This document shows, piece by piece, positions 13,266-63,093 of a DNA stretch of 64,000 nucleotides. The stretch spans positions 294,371 to 358,370 of the forward strand of contig JALDTO010000235.1 of the NCBI GenBank assembly GCA_023515725.1. The letters are read 5' to 3'. A program made the translations under genes and the position numbers. The stretch's first letter is position 1. Every line of letters starts with the position of its first letter. The notes below the pieces were generated by a model, which saw only the letters and a program-made list of their open reading frames with translations, did no database searches and was not told where the DNA came from. Origin of the DNA: Amoeboaphelidium protococcarum X5 (Eukaryota > Fungi > Aphelidiomycota).

Positions 13266-13689
13266 GTTATCGATCAATGCAAATCCAATTAGGTATATCA
13301 AATTGATTTGTTTCAAGGGTGGATAGATTTAATAATAATGATCGATAGTTTTCCAGTTACAGGTGAGATTAATTCCAAAGTCTAATTATATGAGCAGATA
13401 TTGCAGAGAATGAAATATAAACAGAGAAATATAGCAGATATAATGAGGTAGCAAAATCGTGAACAATGAAATGGTGTTGACGTGTCCAATGATATTCAAG
13501 ATCACGACCAACGTTCTGATCTGAGGTGACACCAAGTTGTGCGATCAGTGCAACGTCACGGCTTTGGCTGTCGAGAGCGATGTAGTCGTACTAATGACCA
13601 CTTGTGCTTAAATCGATTTGAATGTGCGTTAAGTAACAGTCACGTGATTATATAAAAACATTTTCGGTTTCATTATCATAAATATCATT

Positions 13690-16155: not shown

Positions 16156-16416
16156 ACTACTTTATAATAAGCAATTAATCACCTCCAATAATATATACTG
16201 AATTCAACAGCATTGATAATAAAATTCAGGCGTCCATCTTGCCAGCGGAAACTATTTTTACAATCGTCTCCATGGGAACTATATCTTAGTAACTTTCATA
16301 GTCCATCTACCTGGAATAAGGAAATGCAGTGGTTAAGAAGGAAGTAATTATAAAAGCATCAAAATCAATATATATTTCAAACAATCACATTAATACCATG
16401 TGCTTCACATGCCTAT

Positions 16417-18726: not shown

Positions 18727-19233
18727 TATCTTCCTGATAATAAAATGTTAAGCTCTTTGTTAGCAGTTGAGACAGAATAAATAGTATGCCGTTCTGTAAG
18801 GAGAGTAAGAGCCAACATTGTCGGCATCAAACAATGGTATGATAAGTTATAGAAAGAGGTTGCCATGGAAACACTTTACGCGCAATCATCGTATGGCAGT
18901 AAATCACTGCTCAATCAGACAGTCTTAAAACAATGCCCATCTTAGCTTTAGTAATGCGACATTATATTGTTACACATCAAATAATGGATACTTTTCAAAA
19001 TTCACACTTTCGAATGATGACACAGCTAAGGAGAAAACCACATGGACATCCCAATCTTGACCATGAGCTGTGATTCAGTGAGAGAAGTGATTACGTTTTG
19101 AGGCGATAAGCCCCGCGTTCCCAGTTTAAAAGTTGGAGAGTTGCAACGGGCTATCTCTTTCTGATAGTGGAACTTGACATTGATTGATCACGTCTATAAA
19201 CTATCGCATTTTAATAACATCACACTTAGAGCT

Positions 19234-22152: not shown

Positions 22153-24588
22153 ATGCTCGTATCTGTTATTCTTGTCATATGCTGGTTTGTCACAGCTGTA
22201 ACTTGCGATTATGCAAATGTGTCATGGGTTGGCACGCTTTCTAACAACTTGCTGTAATACATTGACACTGTGACTGATCTGAATGGTGATTTCATTGTAA
22301 CATATTGGTACACCAATATTCAATCTCAGTTTGTCAACTCATTCAATGGTGCTGTATAAAACACGTAGAATTACTATTATGGATTATATTCGTCTTCATT
22401 TGTTAAAATCAGTGGCTTAACTGGCTAAATTTTGTGGACTATATCAATGTCAGGCCCAGAAGGTGCTTACAGTTATTAGCTAACAACCGACAACTAAGGC
22501 AATCTAATTGCCACAGGTCAACTTTATGCTGGCACTGCTGCTTTGAGATTTTATTTCAATGGTGTATTAGTCTATACTTTAACATAAAGCACGACTACCT
22601 CATGGCATGCGAAGTGGTCTTCATCGGGTCAGTTATAATGGGCTGGTTTTTAATCTAATGAGTTCATGAAAATTAAGGGGCTTGCATCGGATTCTGTCAA
22701 CAACATCTATCAACTCGCTCAAACCAACCAAGCTCTGTCATATACTTACGGTGGATTTAGCTTTAGTCCCACAACTACAGTCTGCAATGTGCGCAAGGTA
22801 AATCCTAGCGGTGTCCAGGTATGGAAGGTAAACATTGGGTATGCTGCCGTGGTAACATGTAGCTCTGCCATTGCCGTGTCTTAAACAACTGGTGACGTGT
22901 ATGTGACGGGATCGTTCACTTTTGGAGACACCTTGTAAAATGGTTATAATACTCCAATTGGCTTACTCGGTATTCGTGATTCTACCAACCAGCTTTTCAT
23001 CACCTAACAAAGCAATATGACTCTGAAGTCAGCTTTGTTTCTGGCCAAGTTTAATAGCAATGGTGTCTTCTAATGGCTAATGCGTATAGACGATTCTCAG
23101 CCGTCACCATCCGCTCTAAGTGTATCACCGAATGGAAATGTTGTCCTTGTTGGGAATTATCAGAACACAGCATCACCTCTCAAATTCTATGACACTAACG
23201 GTTAAATGGTCCGCAGTGTAAATCCTACTCGAGCAATGATGAGTGGCTTTGTGGCTACGTACAGTTCAAATGGTTCTTTAATATATGTCGCGACAATAGA
23301 CGGAAGTGACGATGATTAGCCGTTTGACTGTGTAGTCGATGCTAATTCAAATGTCTTTGTGGCAGCTTAGCTTTCATTGTCCCCCGTGGGAGTAGTTGAT
23401 GGGTTGGGAAACAATTAAAGTATACCATCATCTCAGGCTACTGTATTAAAATTTAGTTCATCTGGTACATTCCTGTATAGTTTCCGTGGCACCAGTGTTG
23501 GTGAAATAAAAGCCGTAAATATTTTACGAGGAGTTAACAATAGTCTGATCTTGGTTGGAAGTTTTGCTAACGTGTCAATCCTCTTTGATAGCTCCGCCAA
23601 TTATGGTATGAATTTGCCCACATCTGTTGGAGGTTTGGTATTTGCAAAGTACTTAGATTATGTGGAAACGCCAAGAACTACTACCACTACTACAACCACA
23701 ACAACTACGACTACTACGAGCACAACAACTACGACTACTACGACCACTACTACGAGCACAACTACGATTACTACTACCACAATTAGTACGACAACAACAA
23801 GTACGACTACGATTGCAACTATGACGACTAGCAATATTACTTTGACATCTGAGTCATTGTCAACTTAAGCCATAACGTCCCCAATCTCAGTAGACGATAT
23901 AGCGAGCACGCACTTCAGTTAAACTTTAATTCTCTACTCTACTTATACATCTACAGATTAGCTTTTCATCGTCACTAATGTTGACTCCCAAAGCTCTGCT
24001 GTCAATGCAAAATCGGCTGCTTCGATGACCCTATCTGGATCTATGGAATCTCTCAATTTAAGTACAGTCTCTTCTTCCAGTTTGAACGTCATTGGTACCA
24101 GTCTATGGTTTATTAGTGATTAATTGGCATTGACTGACAGTCACACGGTTAGTAGTCAAAAACTGTCAGTTTCATAGTACGCAACTACTGCTACTACTCC
24201 ACAGAGTACGCTTTAAATATCCGGGTCCTATACATTTGTTGTTGGCAACACTGTTTTCACTTCTCAAACTCAGGCTGATGGAGATAGCGGTAATAGCAAT
24301 ACTTAGAGTAATAATGTGTCTGGTAATCAGAATTCCGGAGCAGTGTCCTTCTTCTCTGATACAAGCAAATTGGCAGCTGTAGCAGCAGCGTTCTTCGTTC
24401 TGGTCAGTATTTTAGCGTACGTGATGGCCAAATGTGCAAATAGGCGTAAAACTAGAAAGTGGGCATTGCATAAGAATTACAGCAACGCCATCACGACGAC
24501 AACCATGGACATGAACGGTATGACTGCAATGAACGCCACCATCCCTGTGCATCAAACGACTATGATGTAGTAGAATTAGCAGAATTGA
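22153..24588 (+). CDS. Propeller receptor family copy A: beta-propeller + Thr stalk + TM + short tail, no kinase (811 aa)
   Basis: Single table-6 frame with ectodomain homologous to copies B-F. TM LAAVAAAFFVLVSILAYVMA is followed by KCANRRK, and TGA comes about 50 codons later. Confidence 0.85.
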
Positions 24589-25499
24589 TTTAACTATGAT
24601 TGCAAACGTAAGATAATGACAAAGAATAAAAATTAGATGTATTTTATGAACCGCCCAGAATCCGCTCACTTTACAGTCTCTGTGTATAGAATTTATCTGT
24701 TTGATGGGCAGTTAAATGTAAAGATCAGAGATGGTACAATTAATATCTTGTTTACCGTGTTGACGCGTTTCATTCGCTCTCTTTCTTTTATCACACACAC
24801 TGGTTGAAACAATAGTAAATGTCTTTGTCATCTCATTTCATATTCACTTCACTCTTTCACGTTTTACTACTTATTGCGTTTTGTGTGATGGTGGAAATTC
24901 CTCAAAGCATGGTGCAAATAGATTTACAAATGCAGCTGTGGAGTTAACAGAAGATAGAGGGGTGGTAAGGGACTCTCAAATCTAGTGCAACATTTGAACT
25001 GCTGACATAAAGAATGGATAGAATGCGCAGATAGTCATCTTTGCTTGGGAAAATATGGTAAGCAAAATACTGATTGCGCAGTCTTCAGTGATTGAGCAGT
25101 ATGGATTACTTACACTGCGGCTGATGGTTTTGAAGCTTTTGCCTTCTTTCATGTAGGAAATAAAATAGATTAAAGTCAATTGAAAAGTATTTGTGCCGTG
25201 TACCTGAGCTCTATTTAATCGATTTATTCTATTCTATATTACTTATTCTATCATCAATTGATCATCCATAAATTCTGGTTTATTTCCAGTTGGTTTCCAA
25301 TCGCTGGTGTTGGAGGAGCGCGTCATTTGCTCAGCTGCAGTCAGCATGGTTGATACATGTTATTGATGTCGAGTTTGTGGATGCTCTGTAACGCATTCTT
25401 GATCGCCAAAGTCTATGAGATAGTAGTATGGACCTTCTTGAGATGGAGAAGATTAAATATGCAGATTATTAGGCGTTAATAATTATAACGTCTTGCATG

Positions 25500-27180
25500 C
25501 GTTCCAGTGATTATAATCAGCAAACTGCGCTAACTAATTTTCAAGATGAGTAGCTACAAGAAGACTCAATGGTTCTGAGACTGATAAAGGTACTGTGACA
25601 CTTGAAGTGCTTTAGTAGTATTGGAACTTAATCGTCTGCAAATGAAGCTCTTGTGGCTGTCGAGGAGTATATCAATCTCAAGGCTCCCAGTAATGCAAGT
25701 AACATCGATGCTAAAATCAGAAATAAGCTAAGTGATGACAAGTATCATTCTGCCGTGCAATTTGTTGTCCAGATGGAAGAGTGGTTTGATGACTTGACTG
25801 ATTGTGGCTATGCAGTTGTTCAACTTGTGGCTTTGATGTTGCCTTTGTCTAAGTATATAACGAAGTTCGCAAGATGGTGATGAGTCTTAACATTAACGTT
25901 ACTAACAAATCTGACGAGCTGGTGGAAAATTTTATTCTAGCTGGCTTAAAAAAATCAATTCTGCGCACTGATAATATGGCATTGTTAGAGTAATAGTGTA
26001 ATCGTCCGGATGCGTCCTCCCCGGTGTCCAGTGACAAGCCGCGTCAGGTTGCTGTTGCATAATCGCACCATATGCAATTGAAGTACCAGATCACTTGATT
26101 ACTGCTGAATTTTCCATTTATGTCGCACCGTTTAAGAGTCGTCAACTTACCTTAAAATGTGTGATTATCCTAAGCTGGAGGCTTATTGTACGGAATGTCA
26201 CAGGTAACGAAAACAGTGCTGGCCACTCATTTGGATGACATGGATGGATCGAATTTCAGACTTACCTACATGGATGAGTTATATGAATGGATTATTTGGG
26301 TCATATGAACCATGTAATTGGCATAGTCATATGGATATGACTAGTATTACTTTACTTGCTGTGAAGAGTAACCAACTAATTGTAATGGAATAGTTTCAAC
26401 AACAAGAAAGTCTAGTTTTTGATGAATTAAGAATCCGAAGTAGATTGGATTAGAAAGAAAACATCCGATGAGTTGAGCTTAGATGATTAACACTTAATGC
26501 TGTTGGATGATAAATGGAATTGATCGCTAGCCTGGATAAAAAGTGGTCGGTATAGTTTAGCATTGCAACTTGAGTATTGGCGGTGTCTGGTTCTCGCCTC
26601 ATGTGTTTGTGGTAGAGTAGTTGCCTTTTGACTTAATTCTTGGAAGACCATTTTAGATACACAGCCAATACTAGTAAGAAACTAGTGGAGATGGTACGAC
26701 TGTCATCGGTATGATTGATCCTGAAGATTCTGGCAGACGAGTCCAGATATCTGTGGAAGAGAGTTTTAAGAATGTTCCGGAGCTACTCGATAACAAGGCG
26801 CTCAAGAGTTTACATGCTGCTTGTATCAGGCCTATGGAAATGAATGCTATGGTCAACACCAAGTACAAGAAGGTTGGAGTTAAAGTAAAGCCTGCAATTG
26901 ATTAGAATTACATTCTGCCTAAACCTGAAGGTACTGGTGAGATGTTAGAAGATAAAAGGATCGAGCTGGACTTGGAGATTTGCAGATTGAAGAGCTCTGT
27001 CGTGTAATTAGTGAGAAAATCACACTTAAGTAATGCCAGTTCACTCTAATGGATGACATGAATGGATCGATTTCAGACTTACCTAAATGGATGAGTCATA
27101 TGAGCCAGGTAATGGTCCTACTCATGCGGATATGACTGGAGTAGAAGTACTTAACTTGCTTTGTTAAGTAATCAATGCTC
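25500..27180 (+). mobile_element. Degenerate Ty3/Gypsy-type retrotransposon fragments (gag-like, protease C-terminus, pre-RT linker)
   Basis: SKYITKF...NKSDELVENFILAGLKKSI (gag-like), FDLILGRPF (aspartic protease C-terminus, about 26630) and KYKKVGVKVKPA linker typical of fungal Gypsy pol. Several frameshifts and stops. Confidence 0.6.
26224..27175 (+). repeat. Pair of diverged 135-150 bp direct repeats (26224-26375 and 27042-27175)
   Basis: ggatgacatggatggatcgaatttcagacttacctacatggatgagttatatga versus ggatgacatgaatggatcgatttcagacttacctaaatggatgagtcatatga, with similarity continuing downstream. Confidence 0.75.
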
Positions 27181-28154
27181 TTATTTTCATTACCAACTAT
27201 AAAATTCATCATTCATCTTCTTCAACGGTGGACCCTTCCGCACCTGAATCAGTATTCATTTCATCACAACTTTCTGTTACAGTGTATCGACACGTATTAG
27301 ACTTTGTCGACATTCCACCGATCTACAAACTCGTCTGGACTACCAGAGCCACTGCTTCCCAGTGAGCTGCTTTCAATGCAGTCTTACAATTAGCGGTTCA
27401 TATACAATGATATGAACTTGAAGGATATTGGACTCGAACAGCATTAGATGTTGACCACCAATACAAGCTTTGACGCGCTTAGTCGGCCTTATACTGTACA
27501 AAAAAGTACCGGTAGAAGGGCTGATTATCATGAGATCAGTTAGACAGACCGACAGAGTTGATACGGCAACACGCGTGTGCTTTGAAACGGTTGGATGCGA
27601 TTGAGCAGAAACGACCCACAGTTTTAGTCATGGAAGTCATATGGTAAATTCAAACCTCTCATGGCTTGTGACATGATTATATGAATAGTGACATCTATAT
27701 GAATGGATATGGAATATAAGCCATTTAATTTCCCAGCACTGTACCATGCCATACAAATACCATACTTATCTAGCCTTGGTTACGTACAGTCTACTTTGAG
27801 TCTAAATTTCGTGATCTTTTGAACTGAATTAATAATTACTCATGTTGTGTTACATATTACTTTTTCAGCCCGTGTCATAAACTGTATGTTCACTATCGTG
27901 ATTATATACCAGGCATTGACATTGCTAAAATGTTTTATTTGGGTGCGAACAAATGTCTCTCTACTTCAAGGATCTGAGCTTTTTGACAACCAATGTATTA
28001 CAAAGTAGCTATTTTTAGCCGGATGGTGATTTACACATCTGTTGAGTGCAGTCAAACGTCTTTTCATCTTCACAGTAATCAAGTGCATTAACTATTACTA
28101 TTGACTTAATTTTATTTAATTGCTAAATTGTTTAGCGTAATTCATTAACAGTTA

Positions 28155-31100
28155 ATGCTCGTATCTGTTATTCTTGGCATCTGCTCGATTGTAACAACGG
28201 TGGCCTGTGATTATGCCAATGTGTCATGGGTCGGCACGCTTTCTAACAATTGGCTACAGTACATTGACACTGTGACTGACCCCAATGGTGACTTCATTGT
28301 ATCTTATTGGTACACCGGTGTTCAATCTCAGTTTGTCAACTCATTTGGTGGTGCTGTATAAAACACGTAGAATTTCTATTTTGGGTTGTATTCGTCCTCT
28401 TTTGTAAAAGTAAGTGGGACAACTGGTTAGATACTGTGGACAGTATCCATGTCTGGCTATTAAGGTGCTTATAGTTATCAGCTGACTACTGACAATCAAG
28501 GCAATCTGATTGCCGGTGGACAACTTTACGCTGGCGTTGAGGATTTGAATTTTTATTTCAATGGGGCGTTAGTTTATACTCTGCCATATAGCACAACGTC
28601 ATCATGGCACGCTAAATGGTCGTCAGCTGGTCAATTGCAGTGGGCCGGTTTTCAATCTAATGAGTTTCCTACAATTACGGGACTTGCATCAGATTCTGGT
28701 AACAACATTTTTCAAATATCATAAGCTAGCCAGACTCTGTCATATACTTACGGTGGATTTAGCTTTAGTCCCACAACTTCTGTCTGCAATTTGCGAAAGG
28801 TAAATCCTAGTGGTGTTTAGTAATGGAAAGTCAATATTGGGTATGCTGCCGTGGTAACGTGTAGCTCAGCGATTGCGGTGTCTTAGTCAACTGGTGATAT
28901 TTATGTTGCTGGATCGTTCACTTTTGGAGACACCGTGTAGAATGGCTACAAGACTCCAATTGGCTTACTTGGTGTCCGTGATTCTACTAACCAGCTTTTC
29001 ATCACCCAACAAAGCAATATGACTCTGAAGTCAGCTTTGTTTCTGGCCAAGTTTAATAGCAATGGTGTCTTTTAGTGGCTGGTGCGTATAGACGATTCGT
29101 AACCGTCACCATCCGCTTTGAGTGTATCACCCAATGGAAATGTCGTCCTGGTTGGTTCGTATCAGAACACAGCCTCACCTCTTAAATTCTATGATACTAA
29201 CGGCTAATTGGTCCGCAGTGTAAATCCTGCTCGAGTAATGCTAAGTGGCTTTGTGGCGACCTTCGGTTCATCTGGTACAATAGTTTACGTTGCGACCATG
29301 GACGGATCAGGTGATGATTATGCCTACCACAGTGCAGTTGGAGCTGACTCTAATGTCTTTGTGGGATTATACTCTTCATCAACGTCTATTGCCATGATTG
29401 ACGGATTAGGAAATAGCTAAAATATTGCAGCATCTGCGTCAAGTATATTGAAGTTCAGTCCATCTGGTAAGTTTCTGTATAGCTTTCGCGGCAGTAGTGG
29501 TATTTCGGGCAGTAATATACTAAAAGGTTTTAACAACAGTCTGATTTTTGCTGGAAGCTTTAGTGGTGCGTAAAAATTCTTGGATAGCTCCTCCGATAAG
29601 GGTGTGGATTTGCCGACAACTGGTGGAGGTATGGTATTTGCAAAGTACTTGGACTATGTGTAAACGCCAACTACCACTACAACAACAACAACTACTAGTA
29701 CTACCACAACTACCACTACAACTACTACCACTACGACTACGACAACTACTACAACTACATCGACCACGACCACGACAACTACAACCACGACACCTACTAC
29801 GACTACCACAACTACCACAACGACAACAACAACTACTACCACTCCTACTACAACGACGACCACCACCACTAGTACGACAACTACTACGACGACCACAACA
29901 ACGACCACAACAACGACTACGACGACGACTACTACCTCTACTACAACCACGCCTACTACGACTACAACTACAACCACCACCACGACGACTACCACAACGA
30001 CACCCACTAGTACTACGACAGTCATGAGCACAGGATTATATGGCAGTAGTATAATAAGTCACATAACCTCTACTTCGTCTCAAGGTGAGAGTAAAGTTAA
30101 TACTTTGCCAACGTCGTCTGAATTTGGTCTTAAAAGTACCGCTAGTTTGGTGAGTTATACTACTCAAGTGATGTTTACGTTGAAGTCTGCTGAACATAGC
30201 TCCAGATCTGGAGGCAGTATAAGCATAAGTGATGGCGAAGCAGGATAAGTGTAGCCTGGTACTTAGTCTTCTATGATGACACTGTACATTGTTGTCATTG
30301 CGATTGTCTGCTTTTTGATTTTAGTGTTTGTTCTGCTGTCAATGTATTGCATTAGGCGCAGATACATCAAAACTCGAATGCTTTCCTCACGAATGAAGAA
30401 CAAGACATCAAGTAGTGCTGCTGGTACAACTGAACAATCATATAGCACGGTAATAGGCGCTGCGACTCAAGTAGTGGGAACTTTGATGAGTGGGACAACG
30501 TTTATGAACACGTCGATGGAAGTTGCGGTGCCTGCATATTTGGAGTTGAAGCGTGATCTAAATTTCAGAATGGTGCCGAACTCCTTCATTAATAAAGGTG
30601 GTTAAGCTGAGATTTAGGTTGCTGAGATTTTGTCGTATCCACCTGGACATCCTTTTGCTTCAACTGGTACTAAATTCGTAGCTGCTAAGTGTTTTATTGG
30701 CAAGGTGTAGCGTGATAGCGTTAAGTAGGAGATTGCTCTCATGTGGAGATTTAAAGACTATGACCAGATTGCAAAGCTGGTGGGATTTGATGGTTAAAAT
30801 AATGTCTTGCTCATGCTAAATTACGAACTTGGTTCGTTAGAGTAGCTTATTCTGAATCAAGCTCAACCGGTGGATTACTCTTTTGAATTGCAGGCAATGT
30901 TATGCTTTGACGTTATTACCGCATTAGTGGTCCTTCATTAGAATGCTGTGGTCCATAATGACGTCAAGTCTGGCAATTACTTACTGTATCAAGACGTTAA
31001 TGGCGCTTTGAGAGCGTCTCTGACGGACTTTGGTATCTGTACGCTTCAATCACAAGCCAATGTCGTGTAAGGCATAGAATGGAATCGACTACAAGGCCAC

Positions 31101-31412
31101 ACTGTCTCTTATGCTGCACCTGAGGTTCTTGCGAGATCATTGGTACCTGAGCAGCTTCTTCCTGCAAGAGATGTTTATGCTGGTGCTGTGGTCATGTTTG
31201 AGATTTTAGCGCGTATGAAAGCGTGGAGCGGCTATAAAGCAACTCAAGTCACTGAGATGGTCCTTCAAGGTTTGAGACCCGAGGCTTAATTTCTGAATAA
31301 TCGTGCTCTAATGCTTTTCCAGGTTGTTCATCTTGCTTGGGCTCAAGATCCTTTCATGAGGCCCGTTGCTGCGGCTATTGCCAACGAAATTCAGAAGCTC
31401 GCATATTCTTGA
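28155..31412 (+). CDS. Propeller receptor kinase copy B (1085 aa), non-RD kinase
   Basis: Signal peptide, seven propeller repeats, poly-Thr 29670-30020, TM LYIVVIAIVCFLILVFVLLSMYCI-RRR, kinase VAAK, HNDVKSGN, DFG, YAAPE; no internal TGA found. Confidence 0.92.
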
Positions 31413-31770
31413 TGATTTAAATGATGATGATTTAATACAATGTTTTAATGCTTTGATGTGGTTTCAACATTTAAATTTTGTTAAGTGTACAGCAATGGGA
31501 ATACGTTGTGCAATGTATTAACAATACGCCATATTTCTTACCAGAAGTGCTGCACTACTCTAGAGTTCCACTGAATCTATTTTTGGCCTGATGACGATTC
31601 GTACATTGATTTGTTAGCCACGTTGCCATCTTCTACAGAGCCCATGCATTCTTATCATCAACTAATCCTGATACATAAAATATAATTAGCTGATAATAAG
31701 CTAAACTCAATATTGCTGATATTAATAAAATAAGCTAGATATTGAATCAATTCAAATTATCAACTATCTA

Positions 31771-34700
31771 ATGCACGCGTTTGTGATTCTTCTCATCTGC
31801 TGCTTTGCATCGACTGCCTTGTGTGACTATGCTAATGTATCATGGATTGGCACATTATCAAGCTACGATTACTACATTGGCACTGTCGCCGACATTAATG
31901 GTGATTTCATTGTATCATATCGACACAACTCCATTTAATCACAGTTTACTACTACTTTTGGCGGTGCTGTCTAAAATACTCAGAATATCTATGTTGGCAC
32001 GCAGTACTAGTGTTCATTTGTGAAAGTAAGTGCAACGACTGGCTAAATTTTGTGGACGATTTCCATATCAGCCTCGTTCAATATTTTCTGCTATCAGCTC
32101 ACTACAGACAATGCTGGCAATCTTATAGCCGCAGGTTTTCTTTCTCCTGTCCCAACTGATTTGATGTTTTATCGTAATGGAGTATTGGAGTATACTTTGC
32201 CATAAGGTTCGGCAACATGGTATGCTAAGTGGTCATCATAAGGTATATTTTAGTGGGCTAAATTTGCACCTTTTGATTTGCCGTTGATTTAAGGACTTGC
32301 TGTTGATTCTAGCAATAACATCTTTCAACTCTCGTATGCTAGCTAAGCGCTCTCTTACTCGTATGGTGGGTTTTCTTTTGCTCCAACCACTACTGTCTGC
32401 AATTTGCGCAAGGTAGACCCCAGTGGTAATCACTTGTGGCAAGTTAATATTGGGTATGCTGCCGTAACAATGTGCAATTCTGCTATCGCTGTGTCGTAAT
32501 CAACTGGCGATGTTTATGTTGCCGGAACATTTACGTTTGGAGACACTGTGTAGAATGGTTATAATACTCCAATTGGCTTACTAGGCATTCGTGATTCCTC
32601 CAGCTAGCTCTATGTTACTCAGCAAAGCAATATGAATACGAAATCGGCCCTATTTCTGGCCAAGTTTAATAGCGCTGGTGTCTATTAGTGGTTGGTTCGT
32701 ATTGACGATTCTCAACCTAATCCAGCCGCTCTTAAAGTCTCACCAAATGAAAATGTAGTTCTTGTAGGTGATTATTAGAACACAGCTTACCCTCTTCGAT
32801 TCTACGATAAAAACGGATAATTAGTCCGGAGTGTAAATCCCAGTCGAGTTATGCTTAGTGGTTTCGTGGCGTCCTACAGCTCAGCAGGTTCTCTAATCTA
32901 TGTTGCGACAATGGACGGACCTAATGATGATAAAGCGGTCCATATTGCAGTTGACGATTATTCAAATGTATATGTGGCAGCAAGGCTTTGGCCCTCTGTT
33001 GTTCTTACTGACGGGCTAGGAGTCAATTAAATTATTCCTGCATCTCAGTCGACTGTATTGAAGCTAAGTCCAGCAGGTAAATTTCTGTATAGCTTTCGTG
33101 GTTCATGGGGTTCCAATGGTATAACTATCCATAATATTCTGAAGGGCTTTAACAATAGCTTAATTCTGGCTGGTAATTTTGGCGAGCCTGCGTCACTATC
33201 TGATAGTCTCAACAATTATTATTTGGGGTTGCCTACCTCCTCTCGCGGTATAGTTGTCGCAAGGTATGTGGACTTCGTCTCTGCTCCCACTACCACAACA
33301 ACAACCACGTCGACAACTACCACCACCACTACGACTACTACAACTACTACGACAACTACGACAACTACATCGACCACGACCACGACAACTACAACCACGA
33401 CACCTACTACGACTACCACAACTACCACAACGACAACAACAACTACTACTACTCCTACTACAACGACGACCACCATCACTAGTACGACAACTACTACGAC
33501 GACCACAACAACCTCTACTACAACCACGCCTACTACGACTACAACTACAACAACCACCACGACGACTACCACAACAACACCCACTAGTACTACGACAGTC
33601 ATGAGCACAGGATTATATGACAGTAGTATTATAAGTCACATAACCTCTACTTCGTCTCAAGGTGAGAGTAAAGTTAATACTTTGCCAACGTCGTCTGAAT
33701 TTGGTCTTAAAAGTACCGCTAGTTTGGTGAGTTATACTACTCAAGTGATGTTTACGTTGAAGTCTGCTGAACATAGCTCCAGATCTGGGGGCAGTATGAG
33801 CATAAGTGATGGCGAAGCAGGACAAGTGTAGCCTGGTACTTAGTCCTCTATGATGACCCTATACATTGTTGTCATTGCGATTGTCTGCTTTTTGATTTTG
33901 GTGTTGGTTCTGCTGTCAATGTATTGCATTAGGCGCAGATACATCAAAACTCGAATGCTTTCCTCACGAATGAAGAACAAGACATCAAGTAGTGCTGCTG
34001 GTACAACTGAACAATCATATAGCACGGTATTAAGCGCTGCGACTCAAATAGTGGGAACTTTGATGAGTGGTACAACGTTTATGAATTCTTCGATGGAAGT
34101 TGCGGTTCCTGCTTATTTGGAGTTGAAGAGTGATTTGAACTTTCGAATGGTACCCAATTCCTTCATTAATAAAGGTGGATAAGCTGAGATTTAGGTTGCA
34201 GAGATTTTATCATATCCGACAGGGCATCCGTTTGCTACAAGTGGTACAAGATTGGTTGCAGCTAAATGCTTCATTGGCAAAGTGCAGAAGGATAGCGTTC
34301 ATCAGGAAATTGCTTTAATGTGGAGATTTAAAGACTATGACCAGATTGCAAAGCTGGTGGGATTTGATGGTTAAAATAATGTCTTGCTCATGCTAAATTA
34401 CGAACTTGGTTCGTTAGAGTAGCTTATTCTGAATCAAGCTCAACCGGTGGATTACTCTTTTGAATTGCAGGTAATGTTATGCTTTGACGTTATTACCGCA
34501 TTAGTGGTCCTTCATTAGAATGCTGTGGTCCATAATGACATCAAGTCTGGCAATTACTTGCTGTATCAAGACGTTAATGGCGCTTTGAGAGCTTCTCTGA
34601 CGGACTTTGGTATCTGTACGCTTCAATCACAAGCCAATGTCGTGTAAGGCATAGAATGGAATCGACTACAAGGCCACACTGTCTCTTATGCTGCACCTGA

Positions 34701-34989
34701 GGTTCTTGCGAGATCATTGGTACCTGAGCAGCTTCTTCCTGCAAGAGATGTTTATGCTGGCGCTGTGGTCATGTTTGAGATTTTAGCGCTTAAAAAGGCT
34801 TGGGAAGGCTATAAAGCAGCTCAAATCACTGAAATGGTCCTTTAAGGTTTAAGACCGAATGCTCAATTTCAGGATAATCGCTCCCAGATGCTACTTCAAG
34901 TTATTTAAGTCGCCTGGGCTCAAGATCCTTTCATGAGGCCCGTTGCTGCGGCTATTGCCAACGAAATTCAGAAGCTCGCATATTCTTGA
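31771..34989 (+). CDS. Propeller receptor kinase copy C (1072 aa), non-RD kinase
   Basis: Same architecture as B; HNDIKSGN, DFG, YAAPE; single table-6 frame. Confidence 0.92.
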
Positions 34990-35347
34990 TGATTTAAATG
35001 ATGATGATTTAATACAATGTTTTAATGCTTTGATGTGGATTCAACATTTAAATTTTGTTAAGTGTACAGCAATGGGAATACGTTGTGCAATGTATTAACA
35101 ATACGCCATATTTCTTACCAGAAGTGCTGCACTACTCCAGAGTTCCATTGAATCTATATTTAGCTTGATGACGATTCGTACATTGATTTGTTAGCCACGT
35201 TGCCATCTTCTACAGAGCCCATGCATTCTTATCATCAACTAATCCTGATACATAAAATATAATTAGCTGATAATAAGCTAAACTCAATTTTGCTGATATT
35301 AATAAAATAAACTAGGTATTGAATCAATTCAAATCATCAGCAATCTA

Positions 35348-36967
35348 ATGCACGCGCTAGTGATTCTTCTCATCTGCTGCTTTGCATCGACTGCCTTGTG
35401 TGACTATGCTAATGTATCATGGATTGGCACATTGTATAGCAATCTGTTTTAATACAGCGCCACCGTTACAGATCCTTTTGGTGATTTTATTCTACTACAT
35501 CGATATGCTGCCGGTCAATCCTCGTTTTCCACCACTCTTGGTGGTGCTGTCTAGAGTACACAGAATTTTGTTTCTGGATCTCTACCTTTTGCATTTCTGA
35601 AGATTAATGGGTAAACTGGCTAGATCTAGTGGACTGCATCCGTTGACTGCAGTACTGGTGTTTTCAGCTGGCAATTGACCACAGACAATTAAGGTAATCT
35701 CATTGCATCAGGTTTCGTTTTTGGTGTTGCTGCTCTCAGATTTTATCTCAATGGAGTATTAGTCTAGACTTTGGCATAGAGCACAACAACTCCATGGCAT
35801 GCTAAGTGGTCGCCGGCGGGTCAATTTTTGTGGGCCCAATTTCTACCTGCTGATCTTTAAAGGATTACCGGACTTGCAGTTGATTCAGCTAACAATATCT
35901 TTCAAATGTCGTAGGTTAACCAGGCTCTTTCATATACTTATGGAGGATTTAGCTTCAGTCCAACAACTACCGTCTGCAACTTGCGCAAGGTCAATCCAAG
36001 TGGTGTTGAGCTGTGGAAAGTCAATATTGGGTATGCTGCCGTAGTAACATGTAACTCTGCTATTGCCGTGTCGTAGTCAACTGGCGATGTGTATGTTGCT
36101 GGATCGTTCACTTTTGGGGACACTGTGTAGAATGGCTACAATTCTCCAATTGGCTTATTAGGCATTCGAGATTCGTCATATAATCTCTATATTACTCAAC
36201 AAAGCAACTTAATTTTAAAGTCGGCTCTATTCTTGGCGAAATTCAATAGCGCTGGTGCGTTCTAGTGGCAGGTGCGTATTGACGATTCGTAACCAGTACC
36301 ATCCGCTCTAAGTGTGTCGCCAAATGGAAACGTAGTTCTTGTTGGCTCGTACTAAAATGCAGGATATCCTCTTGGATTTTATGCTGGCAGTGGATAATTA
36401 GTCCGCAGTGTAAACCCCAGTCGAGTAATGCTTAGTGGCTTCGTAGCGACCTACAGTCCAACTGGTTCTCTAGTATATGTAGCGACAATGGACGGAGCTA
36501 GTGATGATTAGGCTGTTGATTGTGCTGTGGACGCTGTCTCCAACGTTTTTGTGGCAGCATAGCTTTCATCGCCTTCTGTTGGTGTAGTTGATGGATTAGG
36601 GAATAGTTAAAGCATTCCATCATCTCCATCAACTGTGCTGAAGTTTAGTCCATCTGGTAAGTTTCTGTATAGTTTTCGAGGTACTGGCATCACCGTTCGT
36701 GATATTCTGAGAGGAATCGACAATAGCTTGATTCTAGCTGGTTAATTCACTAGCGGATCTAAATTATTTGACAGTTCCAACAGTAACGGTTTGGATATGC
36801 CGTGGTCTGGTAGTGGTTACGTGTTTGCAAAGTATTTGGATTATGACTCTACTCCGACAACCACAAGTACTACTACTACAACTACATCAACGACTACTAC
36901 TACTACTACTACTACAACTACGACTACCACGACAACTACTCCAACAACAACTACTACGGCTACGACA

Positions 36968-37017
<50 letters not shown>

Positions 37018-38692
37018 ACCGACTACGACAACTACTACGACTTCGACAACGACAACCACGTCGACAACTACTCCTACGACGACGACGACGACTACTAGTA
37101 CTACAACAGCATCGACAACTACGACGACGACCCCTACTACGACGACAACAACAACAACAACAACCACAACCACGACTACTACTCCGATCTCAATTACCAC
37201 TACATCGACTACTGCGACTGCTACGACAACAACTAGTACTGCGCCGACAACTACCACTGCCACAACGTCGTTTGCTAGTACAACATCATCCGAAGCTCAA
37301 TTAAAAAATCTCGTTAACTCCACCTCATCCTAAATTGCTGTTTATATAAGCTCTGTGACAACTTCTCTGTTATCTGATCCACAGACTACCACTGCGATCT
37401 TGATTAGTTATTCTACATAATTAATTTTCGAGTTTCGCTCGAATTAGTAAAGCTCTAGCATTGCGAATAGTATATCACTCAATGACGACGTAGCAGGACA
37501 AGTATAGCCTGGAGCTTAGTCTTAAATGATGACTCTGTACATTATTGTCATTGTGATTGTGTGCGTTTTGATTATTGCACTGGTTTTACTGTCTATGTAC
37601 TGCATTAGGCGCAGGTACATCAAGGCTCGCATGAGATCTTCCAAGACGCTTTTATCAAGGAATATTGGAGGTATGACTGATCTAACATTAAATGCGGCGA
37701 TTGGTTCGGCGATTTAAACAGGAGGTACGGCGATGGGTGGTACAACGTTTATGAATTCTTCGATGGAAGTTGCTGTGCCAGCTTACTTGGAGTTGAAGCG
37801 TGATTTGAACTTTAGAATGGTACCTAATTCCTTTATCAACAAGGGCGGATAAGCTGAGATTTAGGTTGCAGAGATTCTGTCTTATCCGACAGGGCATCCG
37901 TTTGCTACAAGCGGTACAAAATTGGTTGCAGCTAAATGCTTCATTGGCAAAGTGCAGAAGGATAGCGTTCATCAGGAGATTGCTCTGATGTGGAGATTCA
38001 AGGACTATGACTAGATTGCAAAGTTGGTTGGTTTTGATACTGTGCACAATGTATTGCTTATGATCAATTATGAACTGGGTTCTTTGGAACAGCTTATTCT
38101 GGGCCAAACTTTACTTGCTCAGCAGGTCGATTATTCAATGTAGCAATAGCAAATTTTATGCTTGGACGTTTTCACAGCGTTATGGATCTTGCATTAGAAT
38201 GCTGTGGTCCACAATGATATAAAGTCTGGTAATTACTTGGTGTAGCAGGATTCTAATGGCTTTGTGAGAACTGTACTGACAGATTTTGGTATTTGTACTC
38301 TACTTTCGCGGGCGAACGTGGTTTAGGGCATGCAATGGAATCAGCTGAAAGGACACTCTGTAATGTATGCTGCACCAGAGGTTTTGTCTAAGCTACAAGT
38401 TCCAGAGCAGCTTCTCCCTGCAAGAGATGTATATGCTGGTGCTGTGGTGATATATGAGATTTTGGCGCGTAGAAAAGCATGGGACGGCTATAAAGCAGCG
38501 TAAGTGAGTGAAATGGTACTGCAAGGTTTAAGACCGGATGCATCATTTCAGGATTATCGTGTGCAGCTGCTCTTTCAGATTATTTAACTTGCTTGGGCTC
38601 AAGATCCTCAAATGAGGCCTACTGCGGCAGCTATTGCTGGTGAGCTATAAAACATTCCACCAGTAGAATACACGACGGCACTAATGTAATGA
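35348..38692 (+). CDS. Propeller receptor kinase copy D (1114 aa), non-RD kinase
   Basis: Same architecture; HNDIKSGN, DFG, YAAPE; single table-6 frame. Confidence 0.92.
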
Positions 38693-49362: not shown

Positions 49363-49817
49363 ATAATTATAATGAATAGATTACCTTTTCTTGATAAAAT
49401 TCAACTCTTTCTTAAGAGTATCAGAAACTGTTTTCACTCTTCAGATTGTATTTTCATGATTTCCAGTGCAAGTAGCTCTGCTCTGTATGGAGTCGTAATT
49501 CTTGTTAACATTACTAGCATATCGAAACCAACATGTTTTAAGGTTGAATGAAGACAAACTGCCTTGGTAGTACATGACTAGAGAGCAGCTGATCAACTTA
49601 ATATCTGTACTTGAATGGAATCAGATCAGGTCTCTCATTGTGCTTCGATTGGCTATTTTTAGCATTCATTAGTAATGGTTACGTATCTTGATTTTTACCT
49701 CTATAAATGCACAGTATCTAACATTGAATCTTTGTATTTAAATTTAATTACAGTAAATAGAGGAATAGAATCATTCATATAATTAAATCTAGATACAGTT
49801 TAACAATCGTCAATCCT

Positions 49818-52800
49818 ATGCTGGTATCACTGATCTTGCCATCTTCTGCTTTGTGACAACCGTGGTGTGTGATTATGCGAATGTGTCTTGGATTGGCACG
49901 TTATATAACAATATGATGTAGTACGTTGATACAGTGACTGATCTCAACGGTGACTTCATTGTATCCTATTAGTATTATTACGTTCAATCCTAGTTTGCAA
50001 CTACTTTTGGTGGTGCGGTCTAAAATACACAGAATTTCGATTATAGGGATTACACGGCTTCCTTTGTGAAAATAAGTGGCTCAACAGGCTAGATATAGTG
50101 GACTGTGTCCATGGCTGGCCCACAAAGTGCTTATGTCTACAAATTGATTACAGATCAGGCAGGCAATCTCATTGCCACTGGTTAACTTTTCTCTACCGTT
50201 GCTGCTTTGAATTTTTACTTTAATTGAGTGCTAGTCTATACATTGCCATAAGGTACAACCTCCTCATGGCAGGCAAAATGGTCTTCAGCAGGTCAATTTT
50301 AGTGGGCTTCATTTCCGCCAAATGAATTTATCGACATTAAAGGACTTGCAGTTGATTCTGGTAATAATATTTTTCAAATGTCTTAGGCTAACCAGGCTCT
50401 ATCGTATTTATATGGAGGATTTAGCTTTACTCCTGTAACTTCTGTCTGCAACGTGCGCAAGGTAAATCTAAGTGGTGTTGAGTTGTGGAGAGTCAATATT
50501 GGGTATGCTGCAGTGGTAACATGTAACTCTGCTATTGCCGTGTCGTAATCAACGGGTGATGTGTATGTGGCTGGATCATTCACCTTTGGAGACACCATGT
50601 AGAATGGCTACAAGACTCCTATAGGATAAATTGGCGTTCGTGATTCAGCCAACTAGCTCTATATTCTCCAGCAAAGCAACATGATTTTAAAGTCAGCTCT
50701 ATTTTTGGCAAAGTTTAGTAGTAGTGGTGGTTTTTAATGGATGGTGCGTATTGACGACTCTCAACCAGTACCTTCCGCTCTAAGTGTGTCACCGAATGGT
50801 TATGTCAGCCTAGTTGGTTCGTATTAAAATACAGCATATCCTCTTGGATTTTATAATGTCAGTGGATAATTAGGTCGCAGTGTAAATTCCAGTCGAGTTC
50901 TTCTTAGTGGCTTTGTTGCGACTTACAGCCCTGCTGGTGCTCTCCGTTATGTTGCAACAATGGATGGTGCTAGTAATAATAAGGCTGTTAGTTCTGCTGT
51001 TGATGCGAGTTCAAATGTTTTTCTAGCAGCATAGTGTTTATCGTATTCAGTCATTGTAGTAGATGGATTAGGGAATAGCCAAAGTATTCAAGCATCTTCA
51101 TCAACTGTGCTAAAATTTGGTCCATCTGGTGATTTTTTATATAGCTTCCGTAGTACTTATGGTTTATAACCTTACGCAATTTTAAAAGGTTCTAGCAATA
51201 GTCTTATTCTAGCTGGTTAATTTAGTAGCGCATCCAAACTATTTGATAGTTCCGGCAATTATGGTGTGGATTTACCATCGTCTGATAGTGGTTACGTGTT
51301 TGCGAAGTATTTGGACTATAATTCTACTCTGACAACCACAAAGATAACTACTACTACCACAACAACGACAACTTCTACTACAACTACCACCACCACCACT
51401 ACCACTACCACTACTACAACCACGACAACAACAACCACGTCGACAACTACTACTAGTACCACAACAACAACAACTACTACTACCACTACTACTACTCCGA
51501 CCACAACTACGTCTATTACAACCACCACTACAACGACAACTACTCCTACGCCGACTATTACTACAGGTACTACAACAAAATCGACCACTACCGCTACGAT
51601 GACTCCTAATACAACAAAATCGACAACGACACCTACTACCACAACGACAACTACCACGACGACTACTACTACTAGTAGTACTACAACAACATCGATCACT
51701 ACTATTACTACTGTTACGACGACGACTACTGCCACTGCTCCGCCTACAACTAGTACTACGTCTGCTCCGACTATAGTTAATACTACGCCGACAACGACAT
51801 TTGCTAGTGCAACATTATCCTAAGCTGCTTCAATAAGTCTCGTTACCTCCACATCATCCTAAATTGCTGTTGATATTAGCTCTATGACAACTTCTCTGTA
51901 ATCTGATCCTCAGACTACCTCTGCAATCTTGATTTGTTACACTACATAACTAATTTTCGAGTTGCGCTCAAACTAGTAAAGCTCTAGTATTACGATTAGT
52001 ATGTCACTCAATGACGGCATAGAAGGATAGGCATAGCCTGGAGCTTAGTCCTAAATGATGACAATGTACATAACTGTAATTGTGGTTGTGTGTGTTTTGA
52101 TTTTGGTGCTGGTTCTGCTGTCTATGTACTGCATTAGGCGCAGGTACATCAAGTCTCGCATGAGATCTTCCAAGATGCTGTTATTAAGGAATACTGCAGG
52201 TATGACTGATCAAACATTAAATGCTACAATTGGGACGGCGATATAAACAGGAGGTACCGCGATGGGTGGGACAACTTTTATGAATTCTTCGATGGAAGTT
52301 GCTATACCTGCATACTTGGAGTTGAAGTGTGATCTAAATTTCAGAATGGTGCCCAATTCCTTTATCAACAAGGGCGGATAAGCTGAGATTTAGGTTGCAG
52401 AGATTTTATGATATCCGACAGGTCATCCTTATGCTACAAGTGGTGCAAGATTGGTTGCAGCTAAATGCTTCATTGGAAACGTGAATAGAGACAGCGTTCA
52501 TCAGGAGATTGCTCTGATGTGGAGATTTAAAGACTATGACTAGATTGCAAAGCTGGTTGGTTTCGATACTGTACATAATGTACTGCTTATGATCAATTAT
52601 GAACTGGGGCCTTTGGAACAACTGATTCTGGGCCAAACTCAGTATGCTCAACAGGTCGACTATTCAACGGAGTAACAGCAAATTTTATGCTTGGACGTTT
52701 TCACAGCGTTATGGATCTTGCATTAGAACGCTGTGGTCCACAATGACATCAAATCTGGTAACTATTTGGTGCAGCAGGATTCTGATGGTTTTGTGAGAGC

Positions 52801-53197
52801 GGTTTTGACATATTTTGGTAGCTGTACTTTACTTTCGCGGGCAAACGTGGTGCAAGGCATGTAATGGAATCAGCTGAAAGGACACTCTGTAATGTATGCT
52901 GCACCTGAGGTTTTGTTTAAGCTGTAAGTGCCTGAGCAGCTTCTCCCTGCACGAGATGTCTATGCTGGCGCTGTGGTGATATTTGAGATCTTAGCGCGTA
53001 GAAAGGCTTGGGAAGGCTATAAAGCAGTGTAAGTGAGCGAAATGGTTCTATCAGGTATAAGGCCGGAAGCTAAATTACAGGATAATCGCGCCCAGATGCT
53101 ATTTCAAGTTATCCAACTTGCTTGGGCTCAAGATCCGTACATGAGGCCTACTGCTGATACAATTGTTAGTGAAGTGTAAAAGCTCGCGTCGGTATGA
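49818..53197 (+). pseudogene. Propeller receptor kinase copy E, pseudogene
   Basis: 1-nt deletion in the signal peptide (about 49833), in-frame TGA at 50225 and 52409, and DFG changed to YFG (52811). Confidence 0.88.
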
Positions 53198-59880: not shown

Positions 59881-62800
59881 TCATACCGGTGCGAACTTCT
59901 AAATTTCACCAACGATCGCTGCGGCAGTAGGCCTCATAGACGGATCTTGTGTCCATGTAAGTTGAATAATTTGATATAGCATCTAAGCACGATTATCTGA
60001 AAATTTAGCTTCCGGCCTTATACCTGATAGAATCATTTCGCTCACTTACACTGCTTTATAACTTTCCCAAGCCTTTCTACGCGCTAAAATCTCAAACATC
60101 ACCACAGCGCCAGCATACACATCTCTTGCAGGGAGAAGCAGCTCGGGCACTTGGAGTTTAGACAAAACCTCCGGTGCAGCATACTTGACAGAGTGTCCTT
60201 TCAACTGATTCCATTACATGCCTTACACCACATTGGCCCGCGATAGAAGTGTGCATATACCAAAGTCCGTCAATGCTACTCTAAAATCGTCATTTCCGTC
60301 CTTGTACACCAAGTAATTACCGGACTTGATGTCATTATGGACTACAGCATTCTAATGAAGGATCATCATTGCGGTAACAACGTCAAAGCATAACATCGCC
60401 TGCAAGTCAAAAGAGTAATCCACCGCTTAAGCTCGATTCAGGATAAGCTACTCCAGCGAACCAAGTTCGTAATTTATCATTAGCAAGATATTATTTTGAC
60501 CATCAAATCCTACCAACTTTGCAATTTGATCATAGCCTTAAAACCTCCACATCAGAGCAATTTCCTAATGAATGCTATCTCTCTGCACATTGCCAATGAA
60601 GCATTTCGCTGCTACAAATTTTGCACCACTTGTAGCATAAGGATGCCCTGCCGGATAATCAAAGACCTCCGCAACTTAAATCTCAGCTTATCCTCCCTTG
60701 TTGATGAAGGAATTGGGCACCATTCTAAAGTTCAGATCACGCTTCAACTCCAAATATGCAGGCACCGCAACTTCCATCGACGTATTCATAAAAGTTGTCC
60801 CACCCATCGCGGTACCTCCTGTTTATATCGCCGTCCCAATCGTAGCATTTAATGTTTGATCAGTCATACCTCCAAAATTCCTTAATAACAGCATCTTGGA
60901 AGATCTCATGCGTGACTTGATGTACCTGCGCCTAATGCAGTACATAGATAGCAGAACCAGCAACAAAATCAAAACGCACACAATGGCAATGATTATAATA
61001 TAAAGTGGCATCATAGAGGACTGAGTGCCAGGCTATACTTGTCCTTTCACGTCGTCGTCACGAGAGGTACTAGCAGGAATGGAAGAACTGTGTTGATTCG
61101 AATTCCACGCGAATGACATATACGACGCCTAATTAAGCGAGGGCGCAGAATTAGACATCTGGCCAGCTGTACCAGAAGTGGACACAACACTGACTTTGCT
61201 AACATTATAGTATGATGTCGAATTAACCATGCTTGTGATAGCCACTACAGCTGACAGTATACTCACAGACGTCGTGGTGCTAGCAGGAGTAGAGGTAGTC
61301 GTAGTAGATGTAATACTCGTCGTCACAGTCGTAGTTGTAGTTGCGGTAGTTGTCGTAGGAGTAGTAATACTAGTGGTTGTAGTTGATGTAGTAGGAGTCT
61401 TTATAGTGGTAGTGGTCGTTGTCGTAGTCGAGGCTGTCGTTGTCGTGGTAGTTGCTATTAGAGTAGTAACACTAGGTGTAGTCGTGACAGATTTAGATGT
61501 CGTATAAGATATTATCGGAGCAGTAGTCTTGGTGGTGGTTGTGGTCGGAGTAGTGGTGGTGGTGGTGGTACTTGTGGTTGTCGCAATAAACCCATTGTCC
61601 AAATACTTTGCAAACACGTAACCACTACCAGACGACGGCAAATCCAGACCATTATTGCCGGAACTATCGAATATTTTGGATGCGCCACTAAAATTACCAG
61701 CCAGAATCAAGCTATTGTCATACCCTTTCAGAATTTCACGGACGGAGATGCCAGTACCACGGAAACTATATAACAACTTTCCAGATGGACTAAACTTCAA
61801 TACAGTTGACGGAGAGGATGGTATATCCCACTTGGTTCCTAATCCATCAACCACTCCCACTGACGACGATGAAAATTATGCCGCAACGTAAACATTAGAA
61901 TTAGTGTCGACAGCACAATGAACCGCTTAATCATCGCCTGCCCCGTCCATAGTCGCAACGTAAATAAGAGAACCCTGTGGACTGTAGGTCGCCACAAAGC
62001 CACTTAGCATTACCCGACTTGGATTAACACTGCGGACTAATTAACCGCTAGTGTCGTAAAATCCAAGAGGGTAAGCTGTGTTCTAATACTAACCAACGAG
62101 GACAACATTCCCATTTGGTGACACACTTAGGGAGTTTGGTTACGGTTGCGAATCGTCAATGCGCACCAACCATTAAAAGACACCAGCACTATTTAACTTG
62201 GCCAAAAACAGAGCGGATTTCAGATTCGTGTTGCTTTGTTAGGTGGTGTAAAGCTGGTTTGTAGAATCACGAATACCGAGTAAGCCAATTGGAGTCTTTT
62301 AACCATTCAATACATCGTCCCCAAAAGTGAAAGATCCAGATACGTACACATCACCAGTTGATTACGACACGGCAATAGCAGAGTTACACGTAACCACTGC
62401 AGCATGACCGAAATTAACTTTCCATAGCTAAACACCACTGGGATTTACCTTTCGCAAATTACAGACAGAAGTTGGGATACCAAAGCTAATTCCCCCAACC
62501 GTATACCTAAAATCTTAGTAAACTTACGACATTTGAAAAATTTTATTATCAGAATCAACTGCAAGTCCCTTTATCGGTAAAAATTCATTAGCTAGACGTG
62601 AAGTCCACTAAAATTGACCTGCTGATGACCACTTAGCTTGCCATGACGATGTTGGGCCAAAGGACGAATAATAGACCTGCACTTAATTAAAATAAAACCT
62701 TATTGCTGAACCTGCATCATACATCTGGCCCGTGGCTATTAGATTGCCTGAATTGTCTGTGGTCAATTAATGGCTGTAAACGCCTCCGGTGCTACACATG

Positions 62801-63093
62801 GATATTGTCCACAAAATCTAGCCAGTCGAGCCATTAATTTTTACAATAGAAGTGGACTATTACCCATAATCGACATTACTCGTATTTTAGACAGCACCAT
62901 CAAATGAGTTAACAAACTGAGATTGAACATTGTTGTACCAATATGATACAAAGAAGTCACCATTGAGGTCAGTCACAGTGTCGATGTACTATACCATGTT
63001 GTTTGAAAGCGTGCCAACCCATGATACATTCGCCCATTCACTTGTTACAGCTGTACCAAACCAGCCAATGCCAAGAATTACAGATAGAAGCAT
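59881..63093 (-). CDS. Propeller receptor kinase copy F (1070 aa), non-RD kinase, inverted relative to A-E
   Basis: Same architecture; HNDIKSGN, DFG, YAAPE; no internal TGA found on reading. Confidence 0.9.

Follow-up and report, generated by a model that had tools for sequence, protein, structure and literature searches.

The window analysed here is a 64,000-nucleotide stretch of the genome of Amoeboaphelidium protococcarum X5 (contig JALDTO010000235.1, positions 294,371 to 358,370 of the forward strand). It carries a tandem array of six paralogous genes, A to F, recognised from their open reading frames (ORFs) and translations under genetic code table 6, in which TAA and TAG are read as Gln. 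Judged from these translations, they are predicted to encode type-I receptor-like kinases with a signal peptide, a beta-propeller ectodomain, a poly-Thr mucin-like stalk and a transmembrane helix; A lacks the kinase and E is a pseudogene. The copies differ mainly in loops on one face of the propeller, in blades 1-3, 6 and 7, and blade 4 is nearly constant. The reading that we favour, with restrained confidence, is that these loops diverged after old duplications, have since been maintained in each copy and may set what the receptors recognise. An original prediction for genes A to D had described a conserved scaffold with variable, aromatic-rich inter-blade loops, as expected for a ligand-binding face, which implied adaptive change. 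As an observation this was largely right; the aromatic detail was wrong and the adaptive inference failed its own test.

We aligned the ectodomains of nine copies by codon (A to G, including the B2 and D2 copies from contig C213), which gave 477 sites with few gaps. The frameshifted copies on L005, L007 and L012 and the 43%-identical copy H, in which dS is saturated, were left out of the selection analysis. Over the whole ectodomain the ratio of nonsynonymous to synonymous divergence (dN/dS, or omega) is 0.10-0.27, with dS of about 1 between paralogues. In blocks of 30 codons the proportion of nonsynonymous differences (pN) runs from 0.057 in the FGDT region to 0.28 in the last blade, the synonymous proportion (pS) from 0.42 to 0.69, and pN/pS is 0.54 at the top. 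Amino-acid diversity is clustered along the ectodomain (window-variance permutation, p=0.0002), and the four variable spots that had been picked out by eye in A to D lie at the 83rd, 99th, 91st and 99th pN percentiles of blocks of equal size. These spots and the conserved blade 4 are located as follows, all on the plus strand; loops are named by the blade strands (A to D) that they join.

B 28242..28256 (SNNWL), A 22240-22254, C 31858-31869, D 35435-35449: variable D7-A1 loop.
B 28455..28466 (GYQG), A 22453-22464, C 32071-32082, D 35648-35659: variable D1-A2 loop, pN at the 99th percentile, local pN/pS 0.56.
B 28518..28535 (GQLYAG), A 22516-22533, C 32134-32151, D 35711-35725: variable end of strand B2 and start of the B2-C2 excursion.
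B 28653..28673 (QSNEFPT), A 22651-22671, C 32266-32286, D 35843-35863: variable D2-A3 loop, pN at the 99th percentile, local pN/pS 0.76.
B 28839..29111, A 22837-23109, C 32452-32724, D 36029-36301: conserved blade 4, with a long B4-C4 excursion and the RIDDSQP loop.

Blade by blade, dN is 0.11 in blade 4, 0.17 in blade 5 and 0.23-0.30 in blades 1-3, 6 and 7. This is a moderate contrast, of about 2.5-fold for dN between blades and about 2-fold for omega. Blade 4, with dS of about 1.0 and an omega of 0.13, has 48 of its 85 sites (56%) invariant, against 131 of 392 elsewhere (p=1e-4). In the centre that had been called nearly invariant, the motifs FTFGDT, PIGLLG, KSALFLAKFNS and RIDDSQP are indeed at the 0-10th pN percentile, with pS of 0.41-0.78 and pN/pS of 0.02-0.14, but GYAAVVTC, named along with them, is average (50th percentile).

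In and beside the D1-A2 loop several copies have gained a Cys: VDCSTG in D and D2 (D 35648-35659), IFCY in C (32071-32082) and MCSTGG in F (62782-62793). C has a further Cys in the nearby B1-C1 excursion (YQCSF). The gained residues may form paralogue-specific disulfides.

Median dS is 1.0-1.4 across all blades and, among non-homeologous pairs, 0.98, 1.03 and 1.08 in blades 3, 4 and 5, so the conserved centre reflects purifying selection and not recent copying. We therefore consider it highly improbable that gene conversion among neighbours homogenised the centre of the ectodomain and that the conserved scaffold is a copying artefact. Recombination has occurred: the screen that had been proposed with the original prediction gave a pairwise homoplasy index (PHI) test with p<0.001 and a short tract shared by A and B at alignment columns 196-209 (p=0.0005). 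In the tree of the middle segment, B is joined by A instead of by its homeologue B2 (74% support), and this tree is shorter (3.9 vs 5.6-5.8). The cytoplasmic half of C is also B-like, at a dS of 0.24 to B against 1.26 in the ectodomain, where C stands at dS >1 from all other copies; other pairs are equally diverged inside and outside. All this would suit copying between neighbours, but the near-zero dS that it should leave in blade 4 is not seen, the invariant motifs carry ample synonymous differences at low pN/pS, and they are also kept in the 43%-identical H.

The ectodomain is identified by homology, modelling and repeat motifs as a 7-bladed SBBP-type beta-propeller, which bears out the bladed scaffold that had been read from the letters. 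Homology searches used stop-free sequence pieces or public protein models, and table-6 translations were used for in-house computation. With the public model of F, a region search returned bacterial proteins carrying PF06739 at 25-31% identity (HMMER E-values 4.8e-54 to 1e-20), some of them named 'SBBP repeat-containing protein'. A profile of the last blades matched 19,543 proteins, mostly long ones with many repeated stretches. The Pfam SBBP model itself (PF06739) stayed below its cut-off, with no match at E<=0.01 in the public model P0011 and 18.2 bits against 20.5 for the best piece.

For structure prediction with AlphaFold2 we used residues 1-427 of P0011, the syntenic E copy of another strain, which cover blades 1-6, and supplied pieces of family members and bacterial homologues alongside. 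An all-beta model resulted (pLDDT 76, pTM 0.74). Foldseek returned only propellers among its top matches, at low TM-scores of 0.3-0.38, probably because the modelled ring is truncated. The best VIA-align match was the propeller of CylK (7ron_A; Z 25.6, root-mean-square deviation 2.8 A over 272 residues), and generic 7-bladed propellers reached Z <=19.5. The motif aKxxxxGxxxW occurs seven times in the ectodomain, the seventh being completed by the N-terminal strand ANVSWVGTL, and this indicates seven blades with the usual 'velcro' closure. In each modelled blade DSSP assigned strands A and B, a beta-hairpin excursion and then strands C and D. For blade 7 the assignment came from its motif, the AlphaFold2 model of a 160-residue C-terminal fragment (pLDDT 48) serving as a rough check of strand positions only.

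In B the B4-C4 excursion spans 28926-29040 (alignment columns 259-296) and has a length of about 37 residues (FGDTVQNGYKTPIGLLGVRD...QQSN). It hardly changes from copy to copy and can still be recognised in the 43%-identical H, and the model has its lowest confidence here (pLDDT 33-43). The excursion may be a functional insert.

In a meander of four strands, one face carries the D-A and B-C connections, and the opposite face carries the A-B and C-D turns. By this strand topology all four variable spots fall on the same, D-A/B-C face. The claim that they sit in inter-blade loops holds for three of them (the D7-A1, D1-A2 and D2-A3 loops); the fourth covers the last part of strand B2 and the first part of the B2-C2 excursion. 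Fixed-site likelihood models show that omega differs by structural class (likelihood-ratio test, p=5e-8), as follows.

D-A and B-C loops of blades 1-3, 6 and 7: omega 0.30.
D-A and B-C loops of blades 4-5: omega 0.145.
Opposite-face turns: omega 0.18, not raised over strands (p=0.71).
Core strands: omega 0.15.

The site class with the highest omega under model M3 holds 27 sites, of which 20 are in D-A/B-C loops (p=0.003). D-A loops alone hold 9 of the 27, compared with 7.8% of all sites (p=6.5e-5). Variable sites had been said to be rich in aromatic residues, and the reverse was found: the top class contains 4.5% Phe, Trp or Tyr against 13.3% elsewhere (p=2e-5), and sites with at least four residue types contain 10.8% against 13.2%.

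Whether such loops are driven apart by positive selection was addressed with GY94-type site models under code 6, with F3x4 codon frequencies and rescaled M0 branch lengths. Because recombination was detected, the models were run on three partition trees alongside the single tree, and also without the pseudogene E. The one-ratio model M0 gave an omega of 0.20. M3 fitted far better, with omegas of 0.03, 0.28 and 0.77 on the single tree and 0.03, 0.32 and 0.91 on the three partition trees. M2a did not improve on M1a (twice the log-likelihood difference, 2dlnL, was 0) and found no class with omega >1. For M8 against M7, 2dlnL was 1.0 on the single tree and 1.4 on the three partitions (p ~0.5-0.6) and 0 without E, and a grid over the extra site class revealed no hidden optimum. 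In simulations on this tree with M1a and M2a, 5% of sites at omega 3 were detected in 3 of 4 cases and at omega 2 in 1 of 4, with no false positives in four null runs. The null site tests and the power check together make strong pervasive positive selection unlikely; weak or episodic positive selection is still compatible with them.

We thus regard as improbable the adaptive interpretation implied at first for these sites, in which the loops are a ligand-binding face whose diversification, by recurrent adaptive replacement, is driven by an arms race with algal hosts or microbes. It would explain why variable sites lie in D-A loops near blade junctions, and it suits a parasitoid with an expanded set of receptor kinases. 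In 16 D-A loop codons of blades 1-3 there are even pairwise dN/dS values of 1.4-1.8 (C-B, C-D and D-E), but these rest on 4-6 synonymous differences. No tree, with or without E, gave a site class above 1, the gain of M8 over M7 being only 0.5-0.7 log-likelihood units, and the recent branches are strongly constrained.

The recent branches are those of the homeologues, which we compared with older branches in two-ratio models. The variable loops have an omega of 0.17 along the homeologue branches (B/B2 and D/D2) and of 0.33 along the older ones (p=2e-4), the latter still significantly below 1. D-A loops taken alone give 0.08 against 0.40 (p=1.6e-4). In strands and opposite-face turns there is no such contrast, with an omega of 0.125 on homeologue and 0.16 on older branches (p=0.13). 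Loop versions specific to one paralogue are kept by its homeologue, for example VDCSTGVFSW in D and D2 and QSNEFPT in B and B2. The loops are thus constrained within each paralogue lineage, which argues that they matter and are not simply drifting. The pattern fits loops that diverged after old duplications, each copy's version being conserved thereafter, and looks like copies that specialised long ago instead of an ongoing arms race.

A possible account, to which we give less weight, is generic relaxed constraint, in which surface loops tolerate change that core strands and one demanding blade do not. It says nothing about ligand recognition. It agrees with all omegas being below 1 (0.77-0.91 in the highest M3 class), with the most variable loops being significantly below 1 even on old branches, with a contrast of only about 2-fold and with the high-omega sites being mostly small or polar (S, T, G, N, Q, P), as in unconstrained loops. 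It does not readily explain why, on one and the same face, the loops of blades 1-3, 6 and 7 have an omega of 0.30 and those of blades 4-5 one of 0.145, or why turns on the opposite face do not exceed strands. Nor is there free drift at present: the homeologues hold the variable loops at an omega of 0.08-0.17 over a dS of 0.3-0.45.

According to the history that we favour, old duplications (dS ~1) would have been followed by divergence that mainly affected blades 1-3, 6 and 7, in their D-A loops and B-C excursions, and purifying selection would since have preserved the loop set of each copy. In all copies blade 4, and to some extent blade 5, would have stayed near-constant, including their loops on the variable face. 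This constant patch may serve a common function, such as binding a shared ligand moiety, a co-receptor or dimerisation, and the paralogue-specific loops may determine the extracellular targets of each receptor; the single transmembrane helix would then relay the signal to the kinase.

Several points weigh against this history. The face was assigned from strand order and not from coordinates, and the B-C excursions (182 of the 477 sites) may not all lie on the D-A/B-C face. The good structural model is without blade 7 and the N-terminal closing strand, and the blade 7 fragment has the low confidence given above. The by-blade test of omega is weak (p=0.02), and posterior-mean omega differs significantly neither across blades (Kruskal p=0.47) nor in its window variance (p=0.24). 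Saturation at dS ~1 and the recombination detected may have inflated the contrast between old and recent branches. Loops also outpace strands by default in any protein, and the contrast here is only about 2-fold.

Aphelids, the sister group of fungi, kill microalgae, cultivated ones included. A more specific proposal, which we regard as rather doubtful, is that the loops of blades 1-3, 6 and 7 are the specificity determinants of a sensor repertoire for algal cell-surface or cell-wall molecules and that the patch of blades 4-5 binds a common moiety or a co-receptor. If it were true, the array would help to decide which algae the parasitoid recognises and attacks, and would amount to a parasite-side receptor-kinase recognition system, built on a bacterial-type propeller, in an alga-parasite interaction.

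The six genes of the window and their parts are as follows.

22153..24588, plus strand: gene A, receptor-like protein without a kinase; the ORF, with signal peptide, own stalk and short tail, ends after the transmembrane helix.
22207-23664, plus strand: propeller ectodomain of gene A.
28155..31412, plus strand: gene B, full receptor kinase.
Parts of gene B, plus strand: ectodomain 28209-29660, poly-Thr stalk 29658-30272, transmembrane helix 30273-30350, kinase 30561-31409.
31771..34989, plus strand: gene C, full receptor kinase with the most divergent ectodomain and a B-like cytoplasmic half.
Parts of gene C, plus strand: ectodomain 31825-33279, stalk 33277-33849, transmembrane helix 33850-33927, kinase 34138-34986.
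35348..38692, plus strand: gene D, full receptor kinase.
Parts of gene D, plus strand: ectodomain 35402-36847, stalk 36845-37525, transmembrane helix 37526-37603, kinase 37808-38689.
49817..53194, plus strand: gene E, pseudogene copy with ectodomain 49871-51322 and in-frame TGA codons at 50225-50227 and 52409-52411.
59884..63093, minus strand: gene F, full receptor kinase with ectodomain 61591-63039.

Table 6, the code chosen in the original prediction, resolves the window into long genes, with 72 ORFs of at least 200 residues compared with 4 under the standard code; a bacterial-code reading (table 11) of the region yields short ORFs and fragments only. All the strings that had been quoted from A to D were located in the table-6 translations, and the span given for them, 22207 to 36850, starts at codon 1 of A's mature ectodomain and stops where the ectodomain of D ends. 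Full copies start with a hydrophobic signal sequence, followed in order by about 490 residues of ectodomain, a mostly-Thr stalk of 190-230 residues, a transmembrane helix and a kinase. By eye, a hydrophobic N-terminus precedes CDYANVSW, a 22-residue hydrophobic stretch is followed by CIRRRYIK, and the kinase motifs VAAK, HNDxK (non-RD), DFG and AAPE are present. The kinase of P0151, the near-identical public model of F, matches PF07714 with 77 bits (cut-off 23.1) and PF00069 with 75 bits (cut-off 31.7). The kinase of the public model P0004 scores similarly and passes both Pfam models, and stop-free pieces of B and C give weak, sub-threshold matches to the same families.

In the whole 23.6-Mb assembly, DNA and protein searches found about 14 family loci, six of them inside the window. 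The loci outside it are distributed as follows.

Contig C213: three loci (B2, D2 and one frameshifted copy).
Contig C142: two loci.
Contigs C179, C154 and C98: one locus each.

B2 is 91% identical to B in protein sequence, and D2 is the partner of D. With dS of 0.44 for B/B2 and 0.26 for D/D2, they behave as homeologous pairs from a genome-wide duplication, and genome-wide duplications in A. protococcarum are described in PMC10608142. In the homeologous array of C213 (C213:211138-216167; L002, L008), B2 and D2 are 3.56 kb apart, with no C between them. Three contigs, from sequencing runs X1, X3 and X4, connect position 34761 back to 31185, an offset of 3577 bases.

Four sequencing runs, all of one study from 2021, gave contigs that match C and D at >=99% identity over their coding parts and barely reach into the spacers; the ectodomain of C is covered by contigs of all four runs. 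One contig ends in poly(A) at 35031, 45 nucleotides past the TGA stop of C; this is a probable polyadenylation site, which would give C a very short 3' untranslated region. With coverage concentrated in coding parts and one contig ending in poly(A), the runs are very probably of RNA, so that C and D are very probably transcribed.

By its sequence E appears to be dead in two different ways in two strains. Here its TGA codons replace a Gly (GGA) and a Ser (TCA) of the other copies. The syntenic E of strain MP228 is cut after residue 436 by a Ty3/gypsy-type retroelement (L016:11406-16196) with gag, protease, reverse transcriptase, RNase H, integrase and chromodomain. Elsewhere, the homeologous copies at L007:1330-1440 (on C179) and L012 (on C213, minus strand) share a frame change just ahead of the QTTDNQ strand of blade 2, after which L007 is open for 931 residues and L012 has further frameshifts.

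Three public models belong to the family, MIR68_008796, MP228_009472 and MP228_009464, all in the NCBI set for A. protococcarum. MIR68_008796 begins right after the frame change of L007 and L012, and its first 45 residues are identical to the L012 reading. Under our own handles, P0004 begins downstream of the frameshift and treats the poly-Thr stalk as a spliced-out intron, P0011 ends at the retroelement, and P0151, an N-terminally truncated counterpart of F, starts in blade 3. A full-length public model of the SBBP-propeller subfamily was not found, all three being truncated or mis-spliced. Any count of the family based on the public proteome will thus be inaccurate, and the architecture is invisible in the current annotation.

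Just upstream of the array are three long table-6 ORFs on the minus strand, at 11103-13544, 13693-16203 and 16420-18885. The one at 13693-16203 encodes a kinase domain that shares 26% identity with the kinase of B (tblastn E 3e-25) and is thus another, different receptor-kinase-like gene.

An expansion of receptor-like kinases in aphelids was reportedly described by Mikhailov et al. in Current Biology in 2022. In PMC10608142, the expansion of receptor-like protein kinases in aphelids is attributed to the Amoeboaphelidium genome paper. The array agrees with that expansion in organism and in class, with type-I proteins, an extracellular domain, a cytoplasmic kinase and many copies. For the SBBP-propeller subfamily, the poly-Thr stalk and the pattern of variation, no description was found in the literature text searched. 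What these results correct in the record is the adaptive reading of a 'hypervariable face', which is without site-model support, and the set of public gene models of the subfamily, all of them truncated or mis-spliced.

The ectodomain is homologous to bacterial SBBP proteins (25-31% identity) and shares their repeat unit of hairpin, excursion and aKxxxxGxxxW pair, and the C-terminal beta-propeller of CylK (PDB 7ron) is its best structural match (Z 25.6). The bacterial SBBP and CylK proteins are surface or secreted proteins or an enzyme, and are without the fusion to a eukaryotic stalk, transmembrane helix and kinase that the aphelid copies have. Among eukaryotes, the plant receptor kinase CRINKLY4 (ACR4) has an ectodomain that starts with a WD40-type beta-propeller, according to the abstract of bioRxiv 10.1101/2020.08.10.245050. 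The likeness is one of analogy only: both are receptor kinases with a propeller ectodomain, but the propeller is of another family, and CRINKLY4 has a cysteine-rich domain where the aphelid proteins have the mucin-like stalk.

Leucine-rich repeat (LRR) receptor kinases of plants and other expanded receptor families form tandem arrays with a conserved scaffold, variable surface positions and gene conversion between neighbours. Several of these families show omega >1 in site models, and the aphelid family does not. What is new here is a map of where the copies differ, with evidence that the differences are old and maintained. A very probably expressed receptor-kinase family with maintained loops and one invariant blade offers concrete candidates and residues for studies of host recognition.

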